From contig MCFH01000030.1 in the NCBI GenBank assembly GCA_002104945.1, positions 186,001 to 250,000 of the forward strand: a stretch of DNA of 64,000 nt, in the 5' to 3' direction. Shown piece after piece: positions 40,555-53,115 of the stretch. The notes below the pieces were generated by a model that saw only the letters and a program-made list of their open reading frames with translations, was not told the DNA's origin and searched no databases. Source of the DNA: Piromyces finnis finn (lineage: Eukaryota > Fungi > Neocallimastigomycota). Position 1 is the stretch's first letter. Each line of letters begins with the position of its first letter. The position numbers were made by a program, and so were the translations under genes.

Positions 40555-42172
40555 ATGAAAATATTTTCAAAATTAACTTTAATAACTTTGGCCGCTCTTA
40601 GCATTGTTGCTAAGTCACATGCAAAAACAACAAATGAATACCTCAGTACTGCTCAACGTTTAGTTAGCAGTGGTAATTTAAGTGAAGCTTTAAGCGTTTA
40701 TTCCGAAGCTTTAAGCCAGGATCCAAATAATTTCTTAATATATGTTAGACGTGCTATTCTCTATGTAAATATAGGGAGAACCTCTAATGCTATCGATGAT
40801 TTCAGTACTATTATCAAAATAAATCCAAATTTTGAACAAGCTTATCTTAAAAGAGGAAAGTTATACCTTCAATTAGCTGAACTTGATTTAGCAAAGAAAG
40901 ATATTGAAAAATACATACAATTAAAGTCTAATGACAGCGAAGCTGAAAACCTTGTAAGTATTATAGTATCAACTTTGAAATTTTATAATAAAAATATATA
41001 TAAAAAAATAATAATGGATTTTCATTAACTGTATTTTAAAATAATTTATATTAAATTTAATCTACCCAAAGATGGATAATATTAACAATTCACAACAATT
41101 AATTAGAAGCGCAAAAACCGAACTTCGTAAAAAGGATTACAAAAAGGCAATTGAATATCTTTCTGAAGCTATGCAACATTGTCCACAAAGTTTAGAACTC
41201 AGAAAATTAAGAGCTGACTCTTACTACCGTGTAAATGAGGTTGAAATGGCAATTGGTGATTATTCAAGAGCTGTTAAGCTTCAACCAGACAATACTGATC
41301 TTTTAGTTAAAATTGGTGAATTACGTTTAACTATTGGTGAAATTGAAAGTTCATTAAATGAAGTAAAAGAGTGTTTACGTCGTGATCCAGAACATAAACA
41401 ATGTAAGGCTCTTTTCAAGAAAATAAAAAAATTAGATCGTTCAATGAAATATATTGATTCTTCAGTTAATGAAAAGCAATGGCAAAATATTGTTGACAAA
41501 ATTAATAATGGATTAGCTTCAGAAGTCGAAACTCTCGGTGCTGCTAGTTTAAAGTATAAGGTTTACTTTGCTGCCTGTAAGGCTAACCTAAGATTAAAGA
41601 AGGCTGACGAAGCAAAGAGATTCTGTTCTAAAGGTTTAGAAATCGATAATAAGGATGTTGAATTATTAATAAATCGTGCCGAAGCCTCTATGTTATTAGA
41701 AGAATATGATGCTGCTTTAAGAGATTATTCAACTGCTAATGAATACAGTCCACAAGATCGTAGAATTATAGAAGGATACCAAAAAGCACAAAGATTACAA
41801 AAGATGGCCTCAAGAAAAGATTACTACAAAATTTTAGGTGTAAAGAAGACAGCCACTAAACGTGAAATTAAAAAGGCTTACAGAAAATTAGCTCAAATAT
41901 ACCATCCAGATAAGTACCATGGTGATATGACCAAGGAACAAGTTGAAAATAAAATGAGTGAATTAAATGAAGCCTATGAAATTTTAAGTAATGATGAAAC
42001 CCGTGAACGTTTCGATAATGGTGAAGATCCAAATGATCCAATGGGTGGTCAAGGTGGTGGTAATCCATTCGCTAACTTTGGCGGTTTCCCATTCGGTGGT
42101 GGTTTCCCATTCGGTAATGGTGGACCATTTGATGGTTCAAATGGTTTTGGAGGTTTCCAATTTAACTTTTAA
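40555..42172 (+). CDS. DNAJC3: ER co-chaperone DnaJ homolog subfamily C member 3 (P58IPK; signal peptide + TPRs + J domain), two exons
   Basis: Signal peptide, multiple TPRs ([25 protein letters not shown]; [12 protein letters not shown]), J domain [32 protein letters not shown]...[19 protein letters not shown], and a Gly/Phe-rich tail. Intron at about 40954-41071. Confidence 0.9.
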
Positions 42173-44192: not shown

Positions 44193-45452
44193 TTAGTTGA
44201 TCAATGCATCAAAATTAAAATATTGATTAATATCATTCGAGTTTATAGAAGATGTAAAATTATCATTTACTGAATATAAATTATGAAAAGCTTTATTATT
44301 ATTTGATAAATTAGTGCTGGTATTATAATAGATGCAAGGATTTTCTTCTCTTTTTCTTTTATGGTTACTATTTAGATTTTGAGAAAAAGAAGAAGTAGTA
44401 GTAGTAGTACATCTAAATTTTTCTTTTTTGTCCCTATTTAAAAAACAAGCGTCACAGTATTTTTCTTGAGCATTAGGTTTACTCTCTTTTTGAGTATTTA
44501 ATGAAAGCAATTCTAATGAAGGGTAGTAATATATGTTTTGTCGCTGTTCATTATTGTTTTGATTGCTACTACTTTTTTTCTTGCCTTTTCTTTTGCGACT
44601 ATTTGAATTTTTACTATTTTTTTCATTTTCAAAGTTTTTAATAATATTAGCAATAACTATTTCATCTATATTTAAATTGGAATTATTAGTTTTAGTCACT
44701 TTCTTTTCATCGATAGAATAAAAATTTAATCCAAAAAGAAAAAAAGGTTTAAACTCTTGTGTTTTACTGGTTGCTTTATATTCTTCAAAAAAACTATTCA
44801 TATAATAACAGAGGTTATTCTCATTTCCTATGATAAAATCATAAAAGCTAAATTTAATTTCAGAATACCTATTCTCACATAATTTTTTGTTTGATATTAA
44901 AGTAAAGAAATCCGATATTTTTTCTGCTTTTTTCGTATTTTTAGAAACAATAATAAAACAATAAAGTTGAACTTTACCTTTTTTACTTTTATTATTACTT
45001 AAACCAAACTGGATTTCATGATTCTGAAAATAGGGTTCATAAGGTGTATTTTTTATATTAAAAATTATGATTTCAGGGTTTAATTTTTTTTCCATTTCAT
45101 CCTTCATATCTCTTACTTGTTTACATTTAGCTGAAAAACCATTTATTAATACAATATATAAAAGTTTATCCTTGGGTATATCTTTAAAGATAAATTTCAT
45201 TTTACCTTTTTTTCCTTTAATTAACATTTTTATAAAACGGTTTTCATTATTCAAACTATTAATATTAGTAATATTTTTACGTATGTTAAAAAGATTAAAA
45301 ATCTTTTGTAATTGATCAATATGCATAGGATCATTAAATTTATTTTTCACCCAGTTCCAACAAAAGATTTGGTTATCAGGATCAGAGCCTTTAGAATTAA
45401 CAATATAATTTAATATTGAATTTTGTATTTGATTTATTTTATCATTATCCAT
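44193..45452 (-). CDS. Hypothetical protein, 419 aa, intronless; paralogue of 45892-47145
   Basis: Long ORF with complex amino-acid content sharing ordered blocks with the neighbouring ORF (LYIVLINGFSAKCKQVRDMKDEM; LYCFIIVSK; ISDFFTLISNKKL; FYDFIIGNENNLCYYMNSFFEEY; FKPFFLFGLNFY). Confidence 0.75.
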   Translation of the reverse strand: MDNDKINQIQNSILNYIVNSKGSDPDNQIFCWNWVKNKFNDPMHIDQLQKIFNLFNIRKNITNINSLNNENRFIKMLIKGKKGKMKFIFKDIPKDKLLYIVLINGFSAKCKQVRDMKDEMEKKLNPEIIIFNIKNTPYEPYFQNHEIQFGLSNNKSKKGKVQLYCFIIVSKNTKKAEKISDFFTLISNKKLCENRYSEIKFSFYDFIIGNENNLCYYMNSFFEEYKATSKTQEFKPFFLFGLNFYSIDEKKVTKTNNSNLNIDEIVIANIIKNFENEKNSKNSNSRKRKGKKKSSSNQNNNEQRQNIYYYPSLELLSLNTQKESKPNAQEKYCDACFLNRDKKEKFRCTTTTTSSFSQNLNSNHKRKREENPCIYYNTSTNLSNNNKAFHNLYSVNDNFTSSINSNDINQYFNFDALIN

Positions 45453-45891: not shown

Positions 45892-47145
45892 TTAATGATT
45901 ATAATAATTATTAGTATTATTGTTATCATTATTATCATTAATATCCTTTCTAATATTAAATCTTTTATTAGTTTGATAAATATTATTTAAGGTATTCAAT
46001 GCATTATATAAAACCTGATTCTGTGATTCAATCAACCGATTTTGAAGATAAAGATTTTTATCAATATTAAATGAACCATCTAATTTCCCTTTTTCCCTTA
46101 ATGGATTAAAAGGAATAAAAACATTGGTTTTTGGGTAAGTATTTAACTCTTCTTTATTACTCTTTTTTTCGATATTTTTATCTAAGAAGTCAATAAAATC
46201 TGTATAATTTTTATATTCTGCATTATTATTTTTTTTCTTATTCTTTTTATTTAAATAATCTATAGTCAAATTTTCTCTCTCTTTAAAATTAATACTATTG
46301 ATTTCATTTTTTCTTTTATTGGAATATGACTTTGATGATTCATAAAAATTTAATCTAAATAAAAAATATTCTTTAAATCTTGGAGATTCATAATGATTAT
46401 TATATTCCTTAAATAATGAATCCATATAATATTGTATATCATTTTCTTTACATAACATAAAATCCATTAAATTAAAGTCTATAATAGAGTGATTTCTCTT
46501 GTATAGCTTTTTTGTAGATACAAAAGAGAAAAAGTCAGAAATTATAAAAGGAATTTCTAATTTTTTTGCTTTAAAGTCATTTTTGGAAATCGAAATAAAA
46601 CAATAAATTCTATTATGCTTATGTTCTTCCATTCCTATTTTTTTATTTAATTTAAATTCACTTATCGAATATTTGGAATCCTTAGTCATTTCATTGCCAA
46701 ATTCAGTTATATTAAAGACATCAAATTTAAGCTCTATATTTTTTATTCTCATTTCTTTTTTCATGTCACATACTCTTTTACATCTTTTAGAAAAACCTGT
46801 TATCGATACAATATACAAATCTTTATCATTTGACATAGCTTTAAATAGAAAATTTGAATTATTATTGTATTCTTGGACAGGAACAAACTTAATAAAACCT
46901 TCTTCATTATTGTCTCCATTAATTTTTATTTCCTTAAAAATCTTTCTATAAACATTAAATCGTCTATAAATATTTGTCAAATGCTCAGCATAGGCATAGT
47001 TATTTCCTTTCCTTTTATTTTTAATACTTTTATTCTTTACGTAGCAGCAATCCGGATTGCGGTTTAGCTCATATTCTTCAAAAGTAAAGATATAATTAGT
47101 TGTAGATTCAATAAATATTTTTTTAAGGTCTTTGTCTTCAATCAT
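45892..47145 (-). CDS. Hypothetical protein, 417 aa, intronless; paralogue of 44193-45452
   Basis: Shared blocks LYIVSITGFSKRCKRVCDMKKEM; IYCFISISK; ISDFFSFVSTKKL; LMDFMLCKENDIQYYMDSLFKEY; FKEYFLFRLNFY. Confidence 0.75.
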   Translation of the reverse strand: MIEDKDLKKIFIESTTNYIFTFEEYELNRNPDCCYVKNKSIKNKRKGNNYAYAEHLTNIYRRFNVYRKIFKEIKINGDNNEEGFIKFVPVQEYNNNSNFLFKAMSNDKDLYIVSITGFSKRCKRVCDMKKEMRIKNIELKFDVFNITEFGNEMTKDSKYSISEFKLNKKIGMEEHKHNRIYCFISISKNDFKAKKLEIPFIISDFFSFVSTKKLYKRNHSIIDFNLMDFMLCKENDIQYYMDSLFKEYNNHYESPRFKEYFLFRLNFYESSKSYSNKRKNEINSINFKERENLTIDYLNKKNKKKNNNAEYKNYTDFIDFLDKNIEKKSNKEELNTYPKTNVFIPFNPLREKGKLDGSFNIDKNLYLQNRLIESQNQVLYNALNTLNNIYQTNKRFNIRKDINDNNDNNNTNNYYNH

Positions 47146-47325: not shown

Positions 47326-47569
47326 AAAATTATCTCCTTTTTTTATTTAAACATTATTATTAATAAAAATAAAATTATTTTAAATTAAATATAATAATGC
47401 TAATAAAAAAGGTTATAGCCATTATTATTTTTTTTATTAGTATTATAAATTAAAATAAAATCAAATAATATCTATAACCTGTCATATTTTTATTTTTGTA
47501 TAAAAATAGTAAAAAGAACAATTAATATTTATGTATTATTTTTATTTTATTATATTTTATTTTTTAATT

Positions 47570-47817
47570 ACATCTCCATTTCTAATCATTAGTGTAAAAA
47601 AACGATAATTTATAAGTCTTTTTTTTTTTTATTATTATAATTAACTAGTGAAGATAATTGTCTTGAATTTTAATAGATAATCTTACATTTTCAAATTGGA
47701 CAGGTATTTCTTAATAATTAATTATAGATTCAATAATAATTTTTTTAAGGTTTTTGTACGGATATAAAAAGAAAAAATTGTTTTATTTAAATATTTTTTT
47801 AATGAAAAAAGGGTATG
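47570..47817 (-). pseudogene. Internally deleted, stop-containing third copy of the 44193/45892 family
   Basis: The minus strand at 47757-47700 reads KNLKKIIIESIINY*EIPVQ, versus KDLKKIFIESTTNY...FVPVQ in the intact gene. 47755-47817 also matches the upstream region 47180-47245 (GTA[C/T]GGATATAAAAA..GAAAA...TTTAAATA.TTTTTTAA..AAAAAGG). Confidence 0.65.
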
Positions 47818-48659
47818 TTCAAGTATTGCATATTTAATTATAAATAAATAAATAAATAATAAATTAGACATTAAAAAAAAAAAGATAATTTTTTGTCACT
47901 TAATTTAATAATAAATGAAAAAAAAATAAATATTAATAAGATTTATAATATTGGACAGTAATTAAATTTAATTTTACTTTTTCTTTCTTATTACAAAAAA
48001 ATATTTTTCGTCATATTTTATAATAAAAACATTTTAAATTATATATAACAATAAAAAAAAAATAACGCCTACATATTTTTACTTTTGTAAAGATAAATTT
48101 GATAATTTGAAATGTATATTTTCATATATTTTCATTATTTTTACTTTATACTTGAATACATTATTAAAATAAAAATATGATATTATTTATTTCAATAAAA
48201 TTAATATTACTACTACCATTTGCTACTACTACTACTACTGAAGATAAAAATAAATATAAGAATGATAGCAATAACAATTAATATTAATCTAATGTATTTT
48301 ACTATCAATTAGAGTTAGATTATTTAATATAGAGAAAAAAACCACTTTAAAGAAGTGATTATTAAAAAATAAGATATATTAATATTATTATTAATACTTA
48401 TTTATTTTTTTTTTTTACATTCCAAAATAATTTTAATTTGGGCTTAGACTCACATTCTTCAAAATTATTAATAAAACTAGTTATACATTTAATAATTTGT
48501 TTTTTCAAATTAATCATTATAATATAGAATTATAAAAGCATGAAAAGAAAAAACAATTTATTATAAAAATTCTACACATTGTAAATATCAATTTATTTTA
48601 TTTTTATTTCGAAAATGAGAGATTAAAAATTAACAAAAAAGAATAAAAGTTTTTTTATT

Positions 48660-48830
<171 letters not shown>

Positions 48831-49190
48831 GTTAGAATATTTGAAATAAGCCTTAAATATATAATAATGTATTGTATTATAAATTGTATAAGCCACAAAG
48901 TATCGGTTATAAATTTATCATTAAAATATTTTAAATTTATATAGAATAAAATTTAATAATAAAGAAATATTATAAGAATAATAAAATTTCACAATAATCG
49001 ACAGATATTTAAAAATATTTAAGTTCAATTTTAAAAAATTTAAATCATAAAATTAATGTAAATTCTGTTCAAGAAATAACCAAAAAAAAAAAAAAAGAAA
49101 AAAAAAATTTTTTTAACTATTTATTAAAATATTATTAATATTCTATTTCAATAACAATAATTGTAAAGAAGTTGAATAAATCAATTTAAC

Positions 49191-49589
49191 ATGGCGACAG
49201 TAATATTAGGAGGAGCAATATTAGGTTCAGAATTAGTCGCTGCCGTTGTTGAAGTTGGTGTTGTTGTTAGTGCAGGTGTGATGCTTCTAAAAGGAGGACA
49301 ATACGTTAGTGCTAAAGTTGGTGAGAAAGTTAAAGAAATTGAAGCCTCAGTTTCCAAGAGAAATAATTACGAAAAATGTTGTTGTGATTACTTAGGACCG
49401 AGTGGAAAACCATGTGTTCATGTCATATTGAAAAAATCAAGAAAAGAAGCAGAAGAAGCGGCTTTACATTATAAAAATGCTGATGGTGTTATGTATCATC
49501 CTCATAACACCAAGGATAAATTTCCTCATTTCCATCCAACCAAAAATGGAAAAAAAATACCGGGTGTACATTTCCAATTTCCAATTTAA
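49191..49589 (+). CDS. 132-aa intronless protein: hydrophobic Gly/Ala/Val N-terminus plus His-rich C-terminal domain (polymorphic-toxin-like, tentative)
   Basis: Clear coding ORF with G+C well above its flanks. The C-terminal domain is SRKEAEEAALHY...YHPH...FPHFHP...KIPGVHFQFP. The CDS itself is well supported; the functional label is inference only. Confidence 0.7.
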   Translation: MATVILGGAILGSELVAAVVEVGVVVSAGVMLLKGGQYVSAKVGEKVKEIEASVSKRNNYEKCCCDYLGPSGKPCVHVILKKSRKEAEEAALHYKNADGVMYHPHNTKDKFPHFHPTKNGKKIPGVHFQFPI

Positions 49590-49860
49590 TATAAAATAGG
49601 ATGATACAAATTAAGAAACCAATCCACAAATAAAACTTTAAAATAATAATTACTGATAAATAAAATAAATGGTTTAAACGTTTAACCACAAAACGTAATA
49701 ATAACAAAATAACAAATATTAAAATAATAACAAAATTTATAATTAAAAATTTATAAGGATAATATAATTTTAAGATAAAATTAATCATTAATAATAATTA
49801 ATAATAATGTAAATATAAATTATAAAATTTTTATATAGTTAATAATAAGTAAATATATTA

Positions 49861-50048
49861 CACATATTCATCGATAAACCATATTATTCTTTCAGAATAA
49901 CTAGGTTTAGGAAGGAATATTAGAATATGTGAAATAAGTCTTAAATATTTAATAATATATTGTATTATAAAAATATATAAGACACAATACATTCATATAT
50001 TAAAGAATGTAACTTAAGGTAATTTAATAATTGTAACTCTTTAATATA
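49861..50048. other. Three consecutive inverted repeats / stem-loops
   Basis: CACATATTC/GAATATGTG (49861-49931) enclosing TAAACC/GGTTTA and TTATTCT/AGAATAA; GTCTTAAATATTT/AAATATATAAGAC (49938-49983, 12 of 13 paired); TATATTAAAGA/TCTTTAATATA (49996-50048, 11 of 11). Confidence 0.55.
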
Positions 50049-50101
50049 AAATATATTAATAAAATTGACATAATTATAAAACCTAAATTACTGACTTCTA
50101 A

Positions 50102-50132
<31 letters not shown>

Positions 50133-51105
50133 ATATTATTAATCCAATAGATGTAACATCCATTTAATTAATTAAAAAAAATTTAATTCTATCAAACACA
50201 ATTGGTAAACTATGTTAAATAAATAGTAATAAAATATTTCGTATATAAAATTTCAATAATATTCCATATTATAAAAAAAATAAAATATATTATCATTATT
50301 ATTTTTATTTTGAATATTTTGTTGAAGGGTTCAATTAAATTCTAGAATTCGTATTATTATATTAATTGATTTTTAATATCTTGTCTATTTTATTATAATT
50401 AAAAATTGAATATCTAGAATTTATATGTTTTAGAAATATAATATATATATAAGTTTTTTTTTTTTTTTTTTTTTTTTTTTCGGAAAACACAATCTTTAGT
50501 TTCTGACTTTTACCTTTCTCAATATTTTTATAATCAAAATTAAATTTATAAATGAAATGATATTTAAATCTGTGAGTTTCATTAATTTATTGTTATTTTC
50601 AAAAAAACTATTATAAAATTATATTTATAACTAAATTTACTTTTAATGATCTTTATTTGATTATTTGTTATTTTATGAATTGTTATTTTATTATTATTAT
50701 ATGTTCATATTTATTTTAATACTTTATACTTTAATTACTATTTCATATCATTTACATACAAATAAAAATATTTATTATATAGATATAATAATTTTTAAAT
50801 TTTATTTTTATTAGAATCTTAATATTAACTATTAAAACTTGTAAATGTTATTTTTTCTATTCTTTCTATTTTTTTTTTTTTTTTTTTTAATATTATATCA
50901 CCTTATTATTAATAATTTATAATTTTCTTTTTATAAAGTAGTAATTAATTTTTTTAAACATCTATTTCATTTTATTATTTTTAATGTGTGTATATACAAA
51001 ATGTTTTTTTTTAATATTTTTTTTTTTTTTTTTTAATATTTCATAAATTATTATTAATCAGTATTTTTAAGAAAAATAATAAATTTTTATTTTTCATCTA
51101 AACAT

Positions 51106-53115
51106 CTAGAAATTCTTATATTGAGTGCATTCGGATGGAACAGTAAAATCATTTGTATATGCTCCTTTTTTAAATGCCTTCTTTGCATTATAACCAAGAC
51201 CTCTTTTTGCAAAACCAACCCAAGCTAAACATTTCATTTTAGTTCTGACTTCTTTACTACCATTAGTACTATCAATAGCTAAAATAAAACTATCACGTGC
51301 TTGTATGAAAGTTGGATTGCATGGCATTAATTTAAAACTTTGTATAACAAAGTTTAATACAAGAAAGTTTGACGGTTTAAAGCTAAGATTTTTATTTGTG
51401 ACTAAATAATCTGGATCATTCTTATAGGCTTCTACAAAATTCCAGAATACTTCATGTAACATAACTGACCAAACTTCAGAACCTAAATAAACATCAGAAT
51501 TTAAATTTGAATATTTTAAATTGTTATATTTGGTATTAGAAGTAATTGGATATTTTCTAGCGCCGTCAATAACATAAGAAAATAAATTGACTAACGTATT
51601 TCTATTTATATTTTCCCTGAATTGCATAGCATCTGCAAAGAAATCACTATATCCTTCATTTAATTGTTGTGCTTCTGTTGTATCATATAAACATTTGGAA
51701 TTACTTGGACCACCAATCATACGATTTGAAACACCATGACTATATTCATGAATAATAATTTGATTATCAAATGCTGGATCTTTTTCTATATTTTTATTTT
51801 TATTATAGAATGGGAAAAGTTTAAGTATTGGTTTAACACCATCTATAGAAACTGACATTTGAGCATTATTTTCACCACTACGATCACTAACTCTTACAAT
51901 TACTGGATCATTTCCTTGTCCTTTACCACTAAAATTAGTAGTTTGAAAATTACCATTAGCTTCATCAAAACCTAATTTGTAAAATATATCATGAAGCATA
52001 TTACATACGTAAAATGCATTTGCTGCTGCAGCGTTTTGATTTTCTTCAACCTTTTTTTTACTATCATTGTAAGTAAATTCAAACATTAAATTCTTTCCTC
52101 CACTAATAGGTTTATTACCACTAATAGAATCATTACCATCTGAATTTTCATAAACTAATACGTTATTACCTCTAGTATCAGTAAAAGATTTATTATTGTT
52201 ATTATGCCAACCTAATGGTGATGATTCTTTATAAAATGGATCCTTATAAGTTACACGTGAATAACTACCAATATTTGGAGAATTTATTGGAACAACACGG
52301 TAAGTTGCATGATTTGTAAGATCTTGGAAGTTAATGATTTGTCTGTTGTCAATACTTATAAAGACAATAATATAATCAGTTTCTAAATCTAATGTAAGTT
52401 CCCAAACTTGTTCGGCCTTATTTTCCTTACTAGCAATGTAAACTTTTCTTGCCAATAATGAATTGTCAAAAGTGAATGGAATACCACTGACAAGTAAATG
52501 CTTATTGATTGATTTTTCTATTTTAATACTGCTAAGGTCAATAGGTTCTTTGGATATATCTAATTGTTCAACTACAATATTTATTGCTTCTGTTAAATCC
52601 ATTGTTGCAACTTTTGAAGCTGAATTAACTATTTCAAGATTATCCCATATTGATACACCTGAAGAAATAATATTACCGGTTAATGTATCTATATTAACAT
52701 TTATAGCACTGTTACGTACTTCAACCCCATTAATTGCTTGGGCCATATGTATTGAGGCAATTGTAGATTCTTCACCATCAATAATATCTGTAAATATATA
52801 CTCGATATTTGGATAATTTTGGTTCATAAATTGTTTTGCAATTTCAGTAGAGTTTAGAAAATTTCTTTTTTCTAAAGCTTCTTTTTCTATTTCAATTACT
52901 ACTGGTTTGCCATCAATATAATCTTCTTCAAAAGAACGTGAATGTAATTCTGGTGAATTTTGAAATTCATATGTATCAAATTTTGTTTCAGGGAATAAAC
53001 TAGAATCTTCTATGTTTAACTTTTTCATAGCATTTTGGATAAAACTATCTTTCTTATATTCGTTAGCAAATACAATGCTTAACATTGAAAGGATTAAAGT
53101 TTTTTTTAACAGCAT
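51106..53115 (-). CDS. Secreted fungalysin metallopeptidase (M36) with FTP propeptide, intronless
   Basis: Signal peptide; FTP-type prodomain (IHMAQAINGVEVRNSAINVNID); SPLGWH, TRGNNV, LFYKLGFDEANGNFQTTNFSGKGQGND, zinc motif IIIHEYSHGVSNRMIGG, NEGYSDFFA, MPCNPTFIQARDSFI, WVGFAKRGLG. Confidence 0.95.
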   Translation of the reverse strand: MLLKKTLILSMLSIVFANEYKKDSFIQNAMKKLNIEDSSLFPETKFDTYEFQNSPELHSRSFEEDYIDGKPVVIEIEKEALEKRNFLNSTEIAKQFMNQNYPNIEYIFTDIIDGEESTIASIHMAQAINGVEVRNSAINVNIDTLTGNIISSGVSIWDNLEIVNSASKVATMDLTEAINIVVEQLDISKEPIDLSSIKIEKSINKHLLVSGIPFTFDNSLLARKVYIASKENKAEQVWELTLDLETDYIIVFISIDNRQIINFQDLTNHATYRVVPINSPNIGSYSRVTYKDPFYKESSPLGWHNNNNKSFTDTRGNNVLVYENSDGNDSISGNKPISGGKNLMFEFTYNDSKKKVEENQNAAAANAFYVCNMLHDIFYKLGFDEANGNFQTTNFSGKGQGNDPVIVRVSDRSGENNAQMSVSIDGVKPILKLFPFYNKNKNIEKDPAFDNQIIIHEYSHGVSNRMIGGPSNSKCLYDTTEAQQLNEGYSDFFADAMQFRENINRNTLVNLFSYVIDGARKYPITSNTKYNNLKYSNLNSDVYLGSEVWSVMLHEVFWNFVEAYKNDPDYLVTNKNLSFKPSNFLVLNFVIQSFKLMPCNPTFIQARDSFILAIDSTNGSKEVRTKMKCLAWVGFAKRGLGYNAKKAFKKGAYTNDFTVPSECTQYKNF

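Follow-up and report, generated by a model that had tools for sequence, protein, structure and literature searches.

Does a short, intronless gene in the genome of the anaerobic gut fungus Piromyces finnis encode a toxin that was taken from bacteria? The gene lies in a 64,000-nucleotide stretch of contig MCFH01000030.1 (positions 186,001 to 250,000 of the forward strand; hereafter the window, in which position 1 is the first letter), and an earlier note, made from the sequence alone, had remarked that its histidine-rich product resembles the C-terminal tips of RHS and other polymorphic toxins. Our computational analysis bears this out, since the same domain is carried by bacterial RHS, CdiA-like and PT-HINT proteins. 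We put at roughly 0.6 the probability that this gene came from bacteria by horizontal transfer and has been maintained, that it encodes the C-terminal module which a polymorphic toxin releases, and that its product is a weapon directed at gut bacteria or at other competitors. What we observe directly, and what this reading builds on, is the homology, the architecture of the proteins, the linkage of toxin and immunity genes in bacterial genomes, the eukaryotic surroundings of the gene and purifying selection.

A word-indexed search with the fungal protein returned 17 homologues of 101-136 residues (E 3e-46 to 3e-17), among them BCR32DRAFT_277361 of Anaeromyces robustus, the closest named one, and a hypothetical protein of Tritrichomonas musculus, while scans with Pfam and NCBIfam gave no match for the fungal protein or for these 17 close homologues. 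In their alignment, the N-terminus is hydrophobic but varies in sequence; behind it come a charged linker, three cysteines in a row that are invariant (CCC) and a C-terminal block of about 70 residues with a mean column identity of 70%. When a profile of this block, built from eukaryotic proteins only, was searched against 1.84 billion representatives at a cut-off of E <= 1e-3, 112 proteins were matched, and nearly all matches end 0-20 residues from the C-terminus of the protein. Long carriers include two proteins with RHS repeats and an RHS core (P0081 and P0122), a protein of 3,529 residues with SpvB/TcdB_mid/RHS architecture (P0059) and a DUF637 protein of the CdiA/haemagglutinin type (P0109); in mid-sized carriers, the RHS-associated core TIGR03696 stands just N-terminal of the tip, in one case together with PT-HINT. 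The tip was thus found on four scaffold types, as well as in small bacterial stand-alone forms (for example P0045, 107 residues, with an immunity gene), and in the scanned carriers and tips the domain itself was without a significant match to any Pfam or NCBIfam model.

Reciprocal tests make the homology between eukaryotic and bacterial tips secure. Comparison of the two alignments with hhalign gave a probability of 99.5% (E 9e-23, 51% identity over 65 columns), and a hidden Markov model (HMM) built from 81 bacterial tips only recovered the fungal protein at E 6.9e-17 in a search space of 1.8e9. Both groups share the signature GPSGKPK-x-H ... K-x-A-x-x-AA ... H ... P-H-[FY]-H-P ... K-I-P-G-x-H-x-x-[YF]-P, and the fungal protein keeps every family-wide conserved residue of the bacterial toxin (in fungal numbering G69, P70, S71, G72, K73, H77, K85, A87, A90-A91, H103, H113, H115, K122, G125, H127 and P131). 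The similarity extends to what precedes the tip: 24 of the 63 carriers in the bacterial set with enough upstream sequence (2 of the CCC clade) have a segment resembling a transmembrane (TM) helix within 90 residues before it, so that the Gly/Ala-rich helix expected ahead of the tip is present in about a third of bacterial carriers. This hydrophobic segment is often Gly/Ala-rich; the RHS cleavage motif (...DPxGL) stands directly before it and a charged linker behind it. The layout of the eukaryotic protein is therefore that of the complete C-terminal module as released, and not of the catalytic tip alone.

The bacterial loci, for which one genome per bacterial species was taken, link the tip to a second gene. 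The scan returned 43 loci from Pseudomonadota, Acidobacteriota, Bacteroidota, Planctomycetota, Myxococcota, Verrucomicrobiota, Omnitrophota, Saccharimonadota, Actinomycetota and others, three of them in metagenome-assembled genomes of ruminant-gut Bacteroidales (red deer, RUG156 and goat reticulum). In all 42 loci that were analysed, an open reading frame (ORF) begins no more than a few dozen bases from the stop codon of the toxin gene, and 41 of these downstream ORFs belong to one homologous family of about 95-125 residues, the remaining one (61 residues) falling outside it. Members of this family, found in loci L013-L055 (e.g. L034:6206-6520, L045:6243-6602 and L016:6228-6545), have the consensus W-I-G-L ... 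G-A-F-V-N ... F-G-T-F-H-x-Y and are labelled 'hypothetical protein' in RefSeq (e.g. WP_230525453.1, of Noviluteimonas lactosilytica, and WP_255903970.1); the family has no Pfam model, and a sequence search of the PDB with its profile gave nothing significant. The tips are basic (median isoelectric point 9.8), whereas the downstream proteins are acidic (4.7) and without a TM-like segment, which would fit the usual pattern of a toxin that acts in the cytoplasm and is countered there by its immunity protein. We regard the downstream family as a candidate for the cognate immunity family, and a new one. Hits at toxin C-termini with adjacent immunity genes, the check that the earlier note had proposed, thus came out of the profile search and the locus scan together.

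The same immunity family also follows two small bacterial stand-alone toxin genes, P0035 and P0045. We set P0035 aside as a bacterial example of a hydrophobic N-terminus joined directly to a tip, since its ORF reaches the contig end and may be truncated. At the P0045 locus, another ORF (L065:3-218) overlaps the toxin start by 4 bases and has a C-terminus that by eye resembles the end of an outer-membrane efflux protein of the TolC type, a neighbour that hints at another export route for small toxin forms. In the fungus, as had been noted for the region downstream of the gene, no immunity homologue was found in the window or in the genome, the genome search being a weak negative, and none was found near the gene on eukaryote-type contigs. 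Lacking the immunity partner, the locus in the fungus falls short of a full toxin-immunity system.

The stand-alone proteins form a clade of their own. In a tree of 153 tips, the topology of which does not settle the root or the donor phylum, 27 CCC-bearing stand-alone proteins and four fragments or long branches are split from 122 bacterial tips with a Shimodaira-Hasegawa-like approximate likelihood ratio (SH-aLRT) support of 100. Beyond the CCC, the clade has its own conserved residues H93, N106 and D109. Its named members sit in eukaryotic surroundings: that of A. robustus lies on a 224-kb contig between Vts1/SAM and oxysterol-binding-protein genes, and that of T. musculus on a 9.76-Mb contig among kinase, Ras and RCC1 genes. 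The metagenomic members, in which a gene of 34-52% GC stands in flanks of 8-23% GC (some 36-41%), are probably eukaryotic too, judging from composition and context. One of them, P0031, is on a contig of 42% GC on which a neighbouring called gene (L070:580-1020) reads through standard stop codons, which may point to a protist with an alternative genetic code as another bearer of the stand-alone clade; as a hint at the donor, this contig gave no clear result.

Comparing the fungal gene with six homologues, we obtained ratios of non-synonymous to synonymous substitution (dN/dS) of 0.13-0.22 in the tip domain and of 0.4-0.8 in the part N-terminal to it, values to be read with synonymous divergence near saturation and an uncertain N-terminal alignment; they indicate that the tip domain is under purifying selection. 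From the bacterial loci and the tree, the best reading of the fungal gene is a bacterial origin by horizontal transfer, as the earlier note had supposed.

The ORF runs on the plus strand from ATG to TAA without interruption and needs no introns. Its GC content is 36% against 13% in its flanks, in a genome of 56.46 Mb on 232 contigs with about 12-31% GC, and its initial description as an intronless, relatively GC-rich ORF of 132 residues holds. The motif spacing and the CCC..C cluster described for it are likewise exact: SRKEAEEAALH (residues 83-93), HPH (103-105), PHFHP (112-116) and IPGVHFQFP (123-131) are separated by 9, 6 and 6 residues, and a further cysteine follows the CCC at residue 75. 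The N-terminal Gly/Ala/Val-rich segment had been drawn over residues 1-45; its hydrophobic nature is clear, with a 19-residue Kyte-Doolittle maximum of 2.48 at residue 15, and its extent is somewhat shorter, at about residues 1-36. Across the clade, the sequence of this segment is poorly conserved and its character is conserved. By inspection and hydropathy, the N-terminus has no positive n-region, and the hydrophobic stretch, at more than 25 residues, is too long for the h-region of a classical signal peptide; in appearance, it looks like a membrane anchor. Possible roles of the CCC cluster are in palmitoylation or in binding a metal, as some of the ligands of a new Cys/His site.

At the level of the chromosome, the gene stands on a 632-kb fungal contig between genes for a TPR-DnaJ co-chaperone (40555-42172) and a fungalysin M36 peptidase (51106-53115). 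It is bracketed by a direct repeat of about 70 bp, of which the 56-Mb genome holds no further copies beyond these two, and which may have been left behind by a duplication or by the insertion event. Beyond the gene, a comparison with the orthologue in a related fungus (L066/L067) shows a 3' flank that is conserved to the same degree as the coding region; it is probably the 3' untranslated region, and it contains the near-palindrome GGTTTAAACGTTTAACC at 49671-49687. A decayed paralogue (L002:1340-1735; G000 contig C196, about 122400-122790, minus strand) is frameshifted and has in-frame stops. Its hydrophobic N-terminus, a CC, SSGEPRLHF and EAKEAVEHYGNANG are recognisable over two reading frames, the PHFHP motif is lost, and its GC content is 27% in a locus of 16%. 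Coordinates of the features at the locus are collected in the table.

Table. Features of the toxin-tip gene of P. finnis and its immediate flanks, in window coordinates.
Feature	Position	Strand	Evidence or remarks
Complete intronless gene, 132 residues and stop	49191..49589	+	Only intact copy in the genome; homologues
Residues 1-36, hydrophobic, Gly/Ala/Val-rich, TM-like	49191..49298	+	Kyte-Doolittle; alignment; dN/dS; bacterial counterpart
Residues 37-62, Lys/Glu-rich linker with predicted short helix (47-55)	49299..49376	+	Alignment; predicted model
Residues 63-65, CCC cluster	49377..49385	+	Invariant in 27 of 27 stand-alone members; absent from bacterial tips
Residues 66-132, toxin-tip domain	49386..49586	+	Profile; alignment; predicted fold
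Direct repeat, upstream copy	48828..48902	+	About 70 bp; sequence comparison
Direct repeat, downstream copy	49916..49987	+	88% identical to the upstream copy, 1,088 bp apart
Conserved 3' flank	49588..49887	+	73-83% conserved between P. finnis and its relative (L066/L067)

Several smaller observations belong to the same region. (AAAT)n microsatellites adjoin the repeats (48660-48830 and 50100-50135); the Anaeromyces locus has neighbours that differ from those in P. finnis, and the repeats flanking it are microsatellites only. At L066, an insertion of about 495 bp lies between the stop codon and the conserved 3' block. A scan of 47500-51100 with Rfam gave no match, and two neighbouring ORFs at 44193-45452 and 45892-47145 (minus), of 419 and 417 residues, are without a Pfam family.

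An AlphaFold2 model of the domain, computed from an alignment of 99 sequences (mean predicted local distance difference test score, pLDDT, 86.5; predicted template-modelling score, pTM, 0.74), gives the order beta1 (77-80), alpha (84-92), beta2 (99-103), beta3 (113-118), beta4 (126-129), with the domain ending after beta4. In this model, strand alternation would bring H113 and H115 (beta3), H127 (beta4) and H77 (beta1) to the face of the sheet that points away from the helix. Foldseek and VIA-align gave no significant match for the full-length or domain models (Foldseek E >= 0.14), and sequence searches of the PDB with the fungal protein, the eukaryotic profile and a broad profile gave nothing significant. 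In shape and feature searches of the ESM Atlas, the domain comes to lie beside clusters from Bacillota that contain RHS/YD-shell and PT-HINT domains, in agreement with the sequence result. Two of the 99 tips show weak Pfam matches to DUF2188 (best E 0.0027); we take that family to have a short K-E-E-A-x-x-A-A helix between strands, and a remote kinship to the tip is possible.

Nucleases are prevalent among polymorphic-toxin tips (PMC3482391), and on the strength of this prevalence, the charge of the tip, its conserved set of His and Lys and the acidic cytoplasmic immunity protein, we tentatively propose, at somewhat less than even odds, that it acts on nucleic acid, an RNase being somewhat more likely than a DNase. 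The earlier note had instead suggested a His-metal nuclease of the HNH kind. Five conserved histidines on a basic domain would suit an HNH/EndoVII-type (His-Me finger) metal-dependent DNase, and the Atlas feature search does list a Tox-HNH-EHHH cluster, at 0.79, below the lead threshold; that lead was dropped, as a single tip of the 99 matches the Pfam model, at E 1.2. The idea fails because the predicted topology is wrong: a beta-beta-alpha-metal core has its catalytic His at the end of beta1 and a helix behind it, and here the order is beta-alpha-beta-beta-beta and nothing helical follows the hairpin that bears the histidines. It also fails because of this lone, insignificant match, and no HNH structure appears in any fold list, so that we consider a DNase of this type very improbable. 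A non-catalytic His/Cys-rich membrane protein that binds a metal (e.g. Zn, Ni or Cu), perhaps as half of a glyoxalase-like site completed by dimerisation, would make use of the histidines on beta1, beta3 and beta4 and of the CCC; a metal chaperone would have no need of the toxin position and dedicated immunity gene that the domain has in bacteria, and we think this improbable as well.

There is next to no chance that the gene is bacterial contamination or a spurious ORF. It is intronless and GC-richer than its surroundings, as a contaminant might be, and yet it is embedded in 13% GC flanks on a 632-kb contig with TPR-DnaJ and fungalysin M36 neighbours, has orthologues on chromosomal contigs of Anaeromyces and Tritrichomonas and shares its 3' flank with a related fungus, a genomic context that refutes contamination; the 17 homologues and the purifying selection on the C-terminal domain show that it is not a chance ORF. 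A harder case is that the fungal protein has been domesticated for an internal role, as a membrane-tethered and possibly CCC-palmitoylated cytosolic enzyme that takes part in the processing of RNA, in the response to stress, in regulated cell death or in self/non-self reactions. Such cases have been described by Zhang et al. (PMC3482391), and the gene is maintained despite having no immunity gene; the lack of a signal peptide, the long hydrophobic N-terminus and the Lys-rich stretch behind it suggest an N-out/C-in topology, and the invariant CCC and the additional conserved H93, N106 and D109 are peculiar to the eukaryotic proteins. We nevertheless hold domestication to be unlikely and favour a weapon, because the clade is so far restricted to gut or anaerobic eukaryotes living amid dense bacteria and because none of the residues that are conserved throughout the bacterial toxin family has been lost; single-copy, patchy distribution is likewise unlike that of a core cellular function.

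For the captured toxin module, we therefore have the following mechanism in mind. In bacteria, a basic, His/Lys-rich tip of about 65 residues ends RHS, CdiA-like or PT-HINT delivery proteins and is presumably neutralised by the acidic cytoplasmic protein encoded directly downstream. The eukaryotic clade, comprising gut fungi, Tritrichomonas and other AT-rich protists, retains only the hydrophobic segment, linker and tip, has gained the invariant CCC and is without an immunity gene. The fungal protein would then be made and used against gut bacteria or other competitors, its hydrophobic segment serving for membrane anchoring or insertion and its tip acting on a cytoplasmic target, most likely nucleic acid. 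Several points weigh against this picture. The label 'toxin' for the family rests on architecture and gene linkage, and a protein of about 130 residues with no classical signal peptide, by inspection and hydropathy, has no obvious route into the bacterial cytoplasm. By the positive-inside rule, the Lys-rich stretch after the hydrophobic segment may put the tip in the fungal cytosol. The donor lineage is not fixed by the 153-tip tree, and the missing immunity gene in the fungal genome counts as a weak negative. A bolder version, which we regard as doubtful, would make the stand-alone clade a minimal toxin that needs no secretion system, in which a glycine-zipper-like segment carries a tip of new enzymatic fold across membranes under the control of the CCC (by lipidation or as a metal site), and which was captured once and then spread from eukaryote to eukaryote among fungi, parabasalids and other protists.

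Two things are new here: a toxin-tip family and its cognate immunity family, both undescribed until now and widespread over many phyla, and a CCC-marked stand-alone eukaryotic clade common to Neocallimastigomycota and Parabasalia. That polymorphic-toxin domains are transferred to fungi and other eukaryotes is already established (PMC3482391). Our results describe a complete released toxin module that two or more unrelated groups of gut eukaryotes captured without its immunity gene, and they are further evidence for anaerobic gut fungi taking up arms from the warfare among bacteria. A domain as small as 65 residues offers material for finding a new toxin activity, and the CCC and the immunity-free state raise the question of how a eukaryote tolerates and deploys such a toxin.

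Among known folds, the vicinal oxygen chelate (VOC) module of glyoxalases, bleomycin-resistance proteins and dioxygenases has the same beta-alpha-beta-beta-beta order over the whole predicted domain, and the tip has histidines on predicted beta1 and beta4, the strands on which VOC metal ligands sit; the tip differs in being a single module, where VOC modules are paired, in having no sequence similarity to them and in its bacterial role as a toxin. BECR RNase toxins (CdiA-CT, PDB 5T86; bioRxiv 10.64898/2026.05.10.723254) are similarly small, basic tips with conserved His and Lys, in which one helix packs on a four-stranded antiparallel sheet, as is predicted here, and they too are paired with an acidic cytoplasmic immunity protein. 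The BECR fold is defined by an N-terminal helix, a four-stranded antiparallel sheet and an active site of D/E/N, H and R/K. In the predicted tip, by contrast, an extra beta1 precedes the helix, and there is no sequence similarity.

As a system, the family behaves in bacteria like other polymorphic toxins of the RHS/YD, CdiA/filamentous-haemagglutinin and PT-HINT types (PMC3482391): the domain sits at the extreme C-terminus of RHS, SpvB/TcdB-RHS, DUF637 and PT-HINT proteins, one tip is used on several delivery scaffolds, a hydrophobic segment stands between cleavage motif and tip, and a cognate immunity gene follows. It departs from them in that the tip and immunity families are without a Pfam or NCBIfam model, a name or a solved structure, and in that the fungal protein stands alone, with the CCC and without delivery scaffold or immunity gene. 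Capture of conflict genes by eukaryotes has precedents, at least 13 polymorphic-toxin domains having been transferred to fungi (PMC3482391) and gut fungi having taken a PoNi immunity gene from Ruminococcus (10.1101/2020.10.15.341461). As in those cases, a bacterial gene is found in native chromosomal DNA of gut fungi and is conserved across genera, and its presumed role is competition with gut bacteria. In the case of PoNi, it was the immunity protein that was captured, whereas here the toxin of another, undescribed family was taken, and its stand-alone clade is common to gut fungi and parabasalids.
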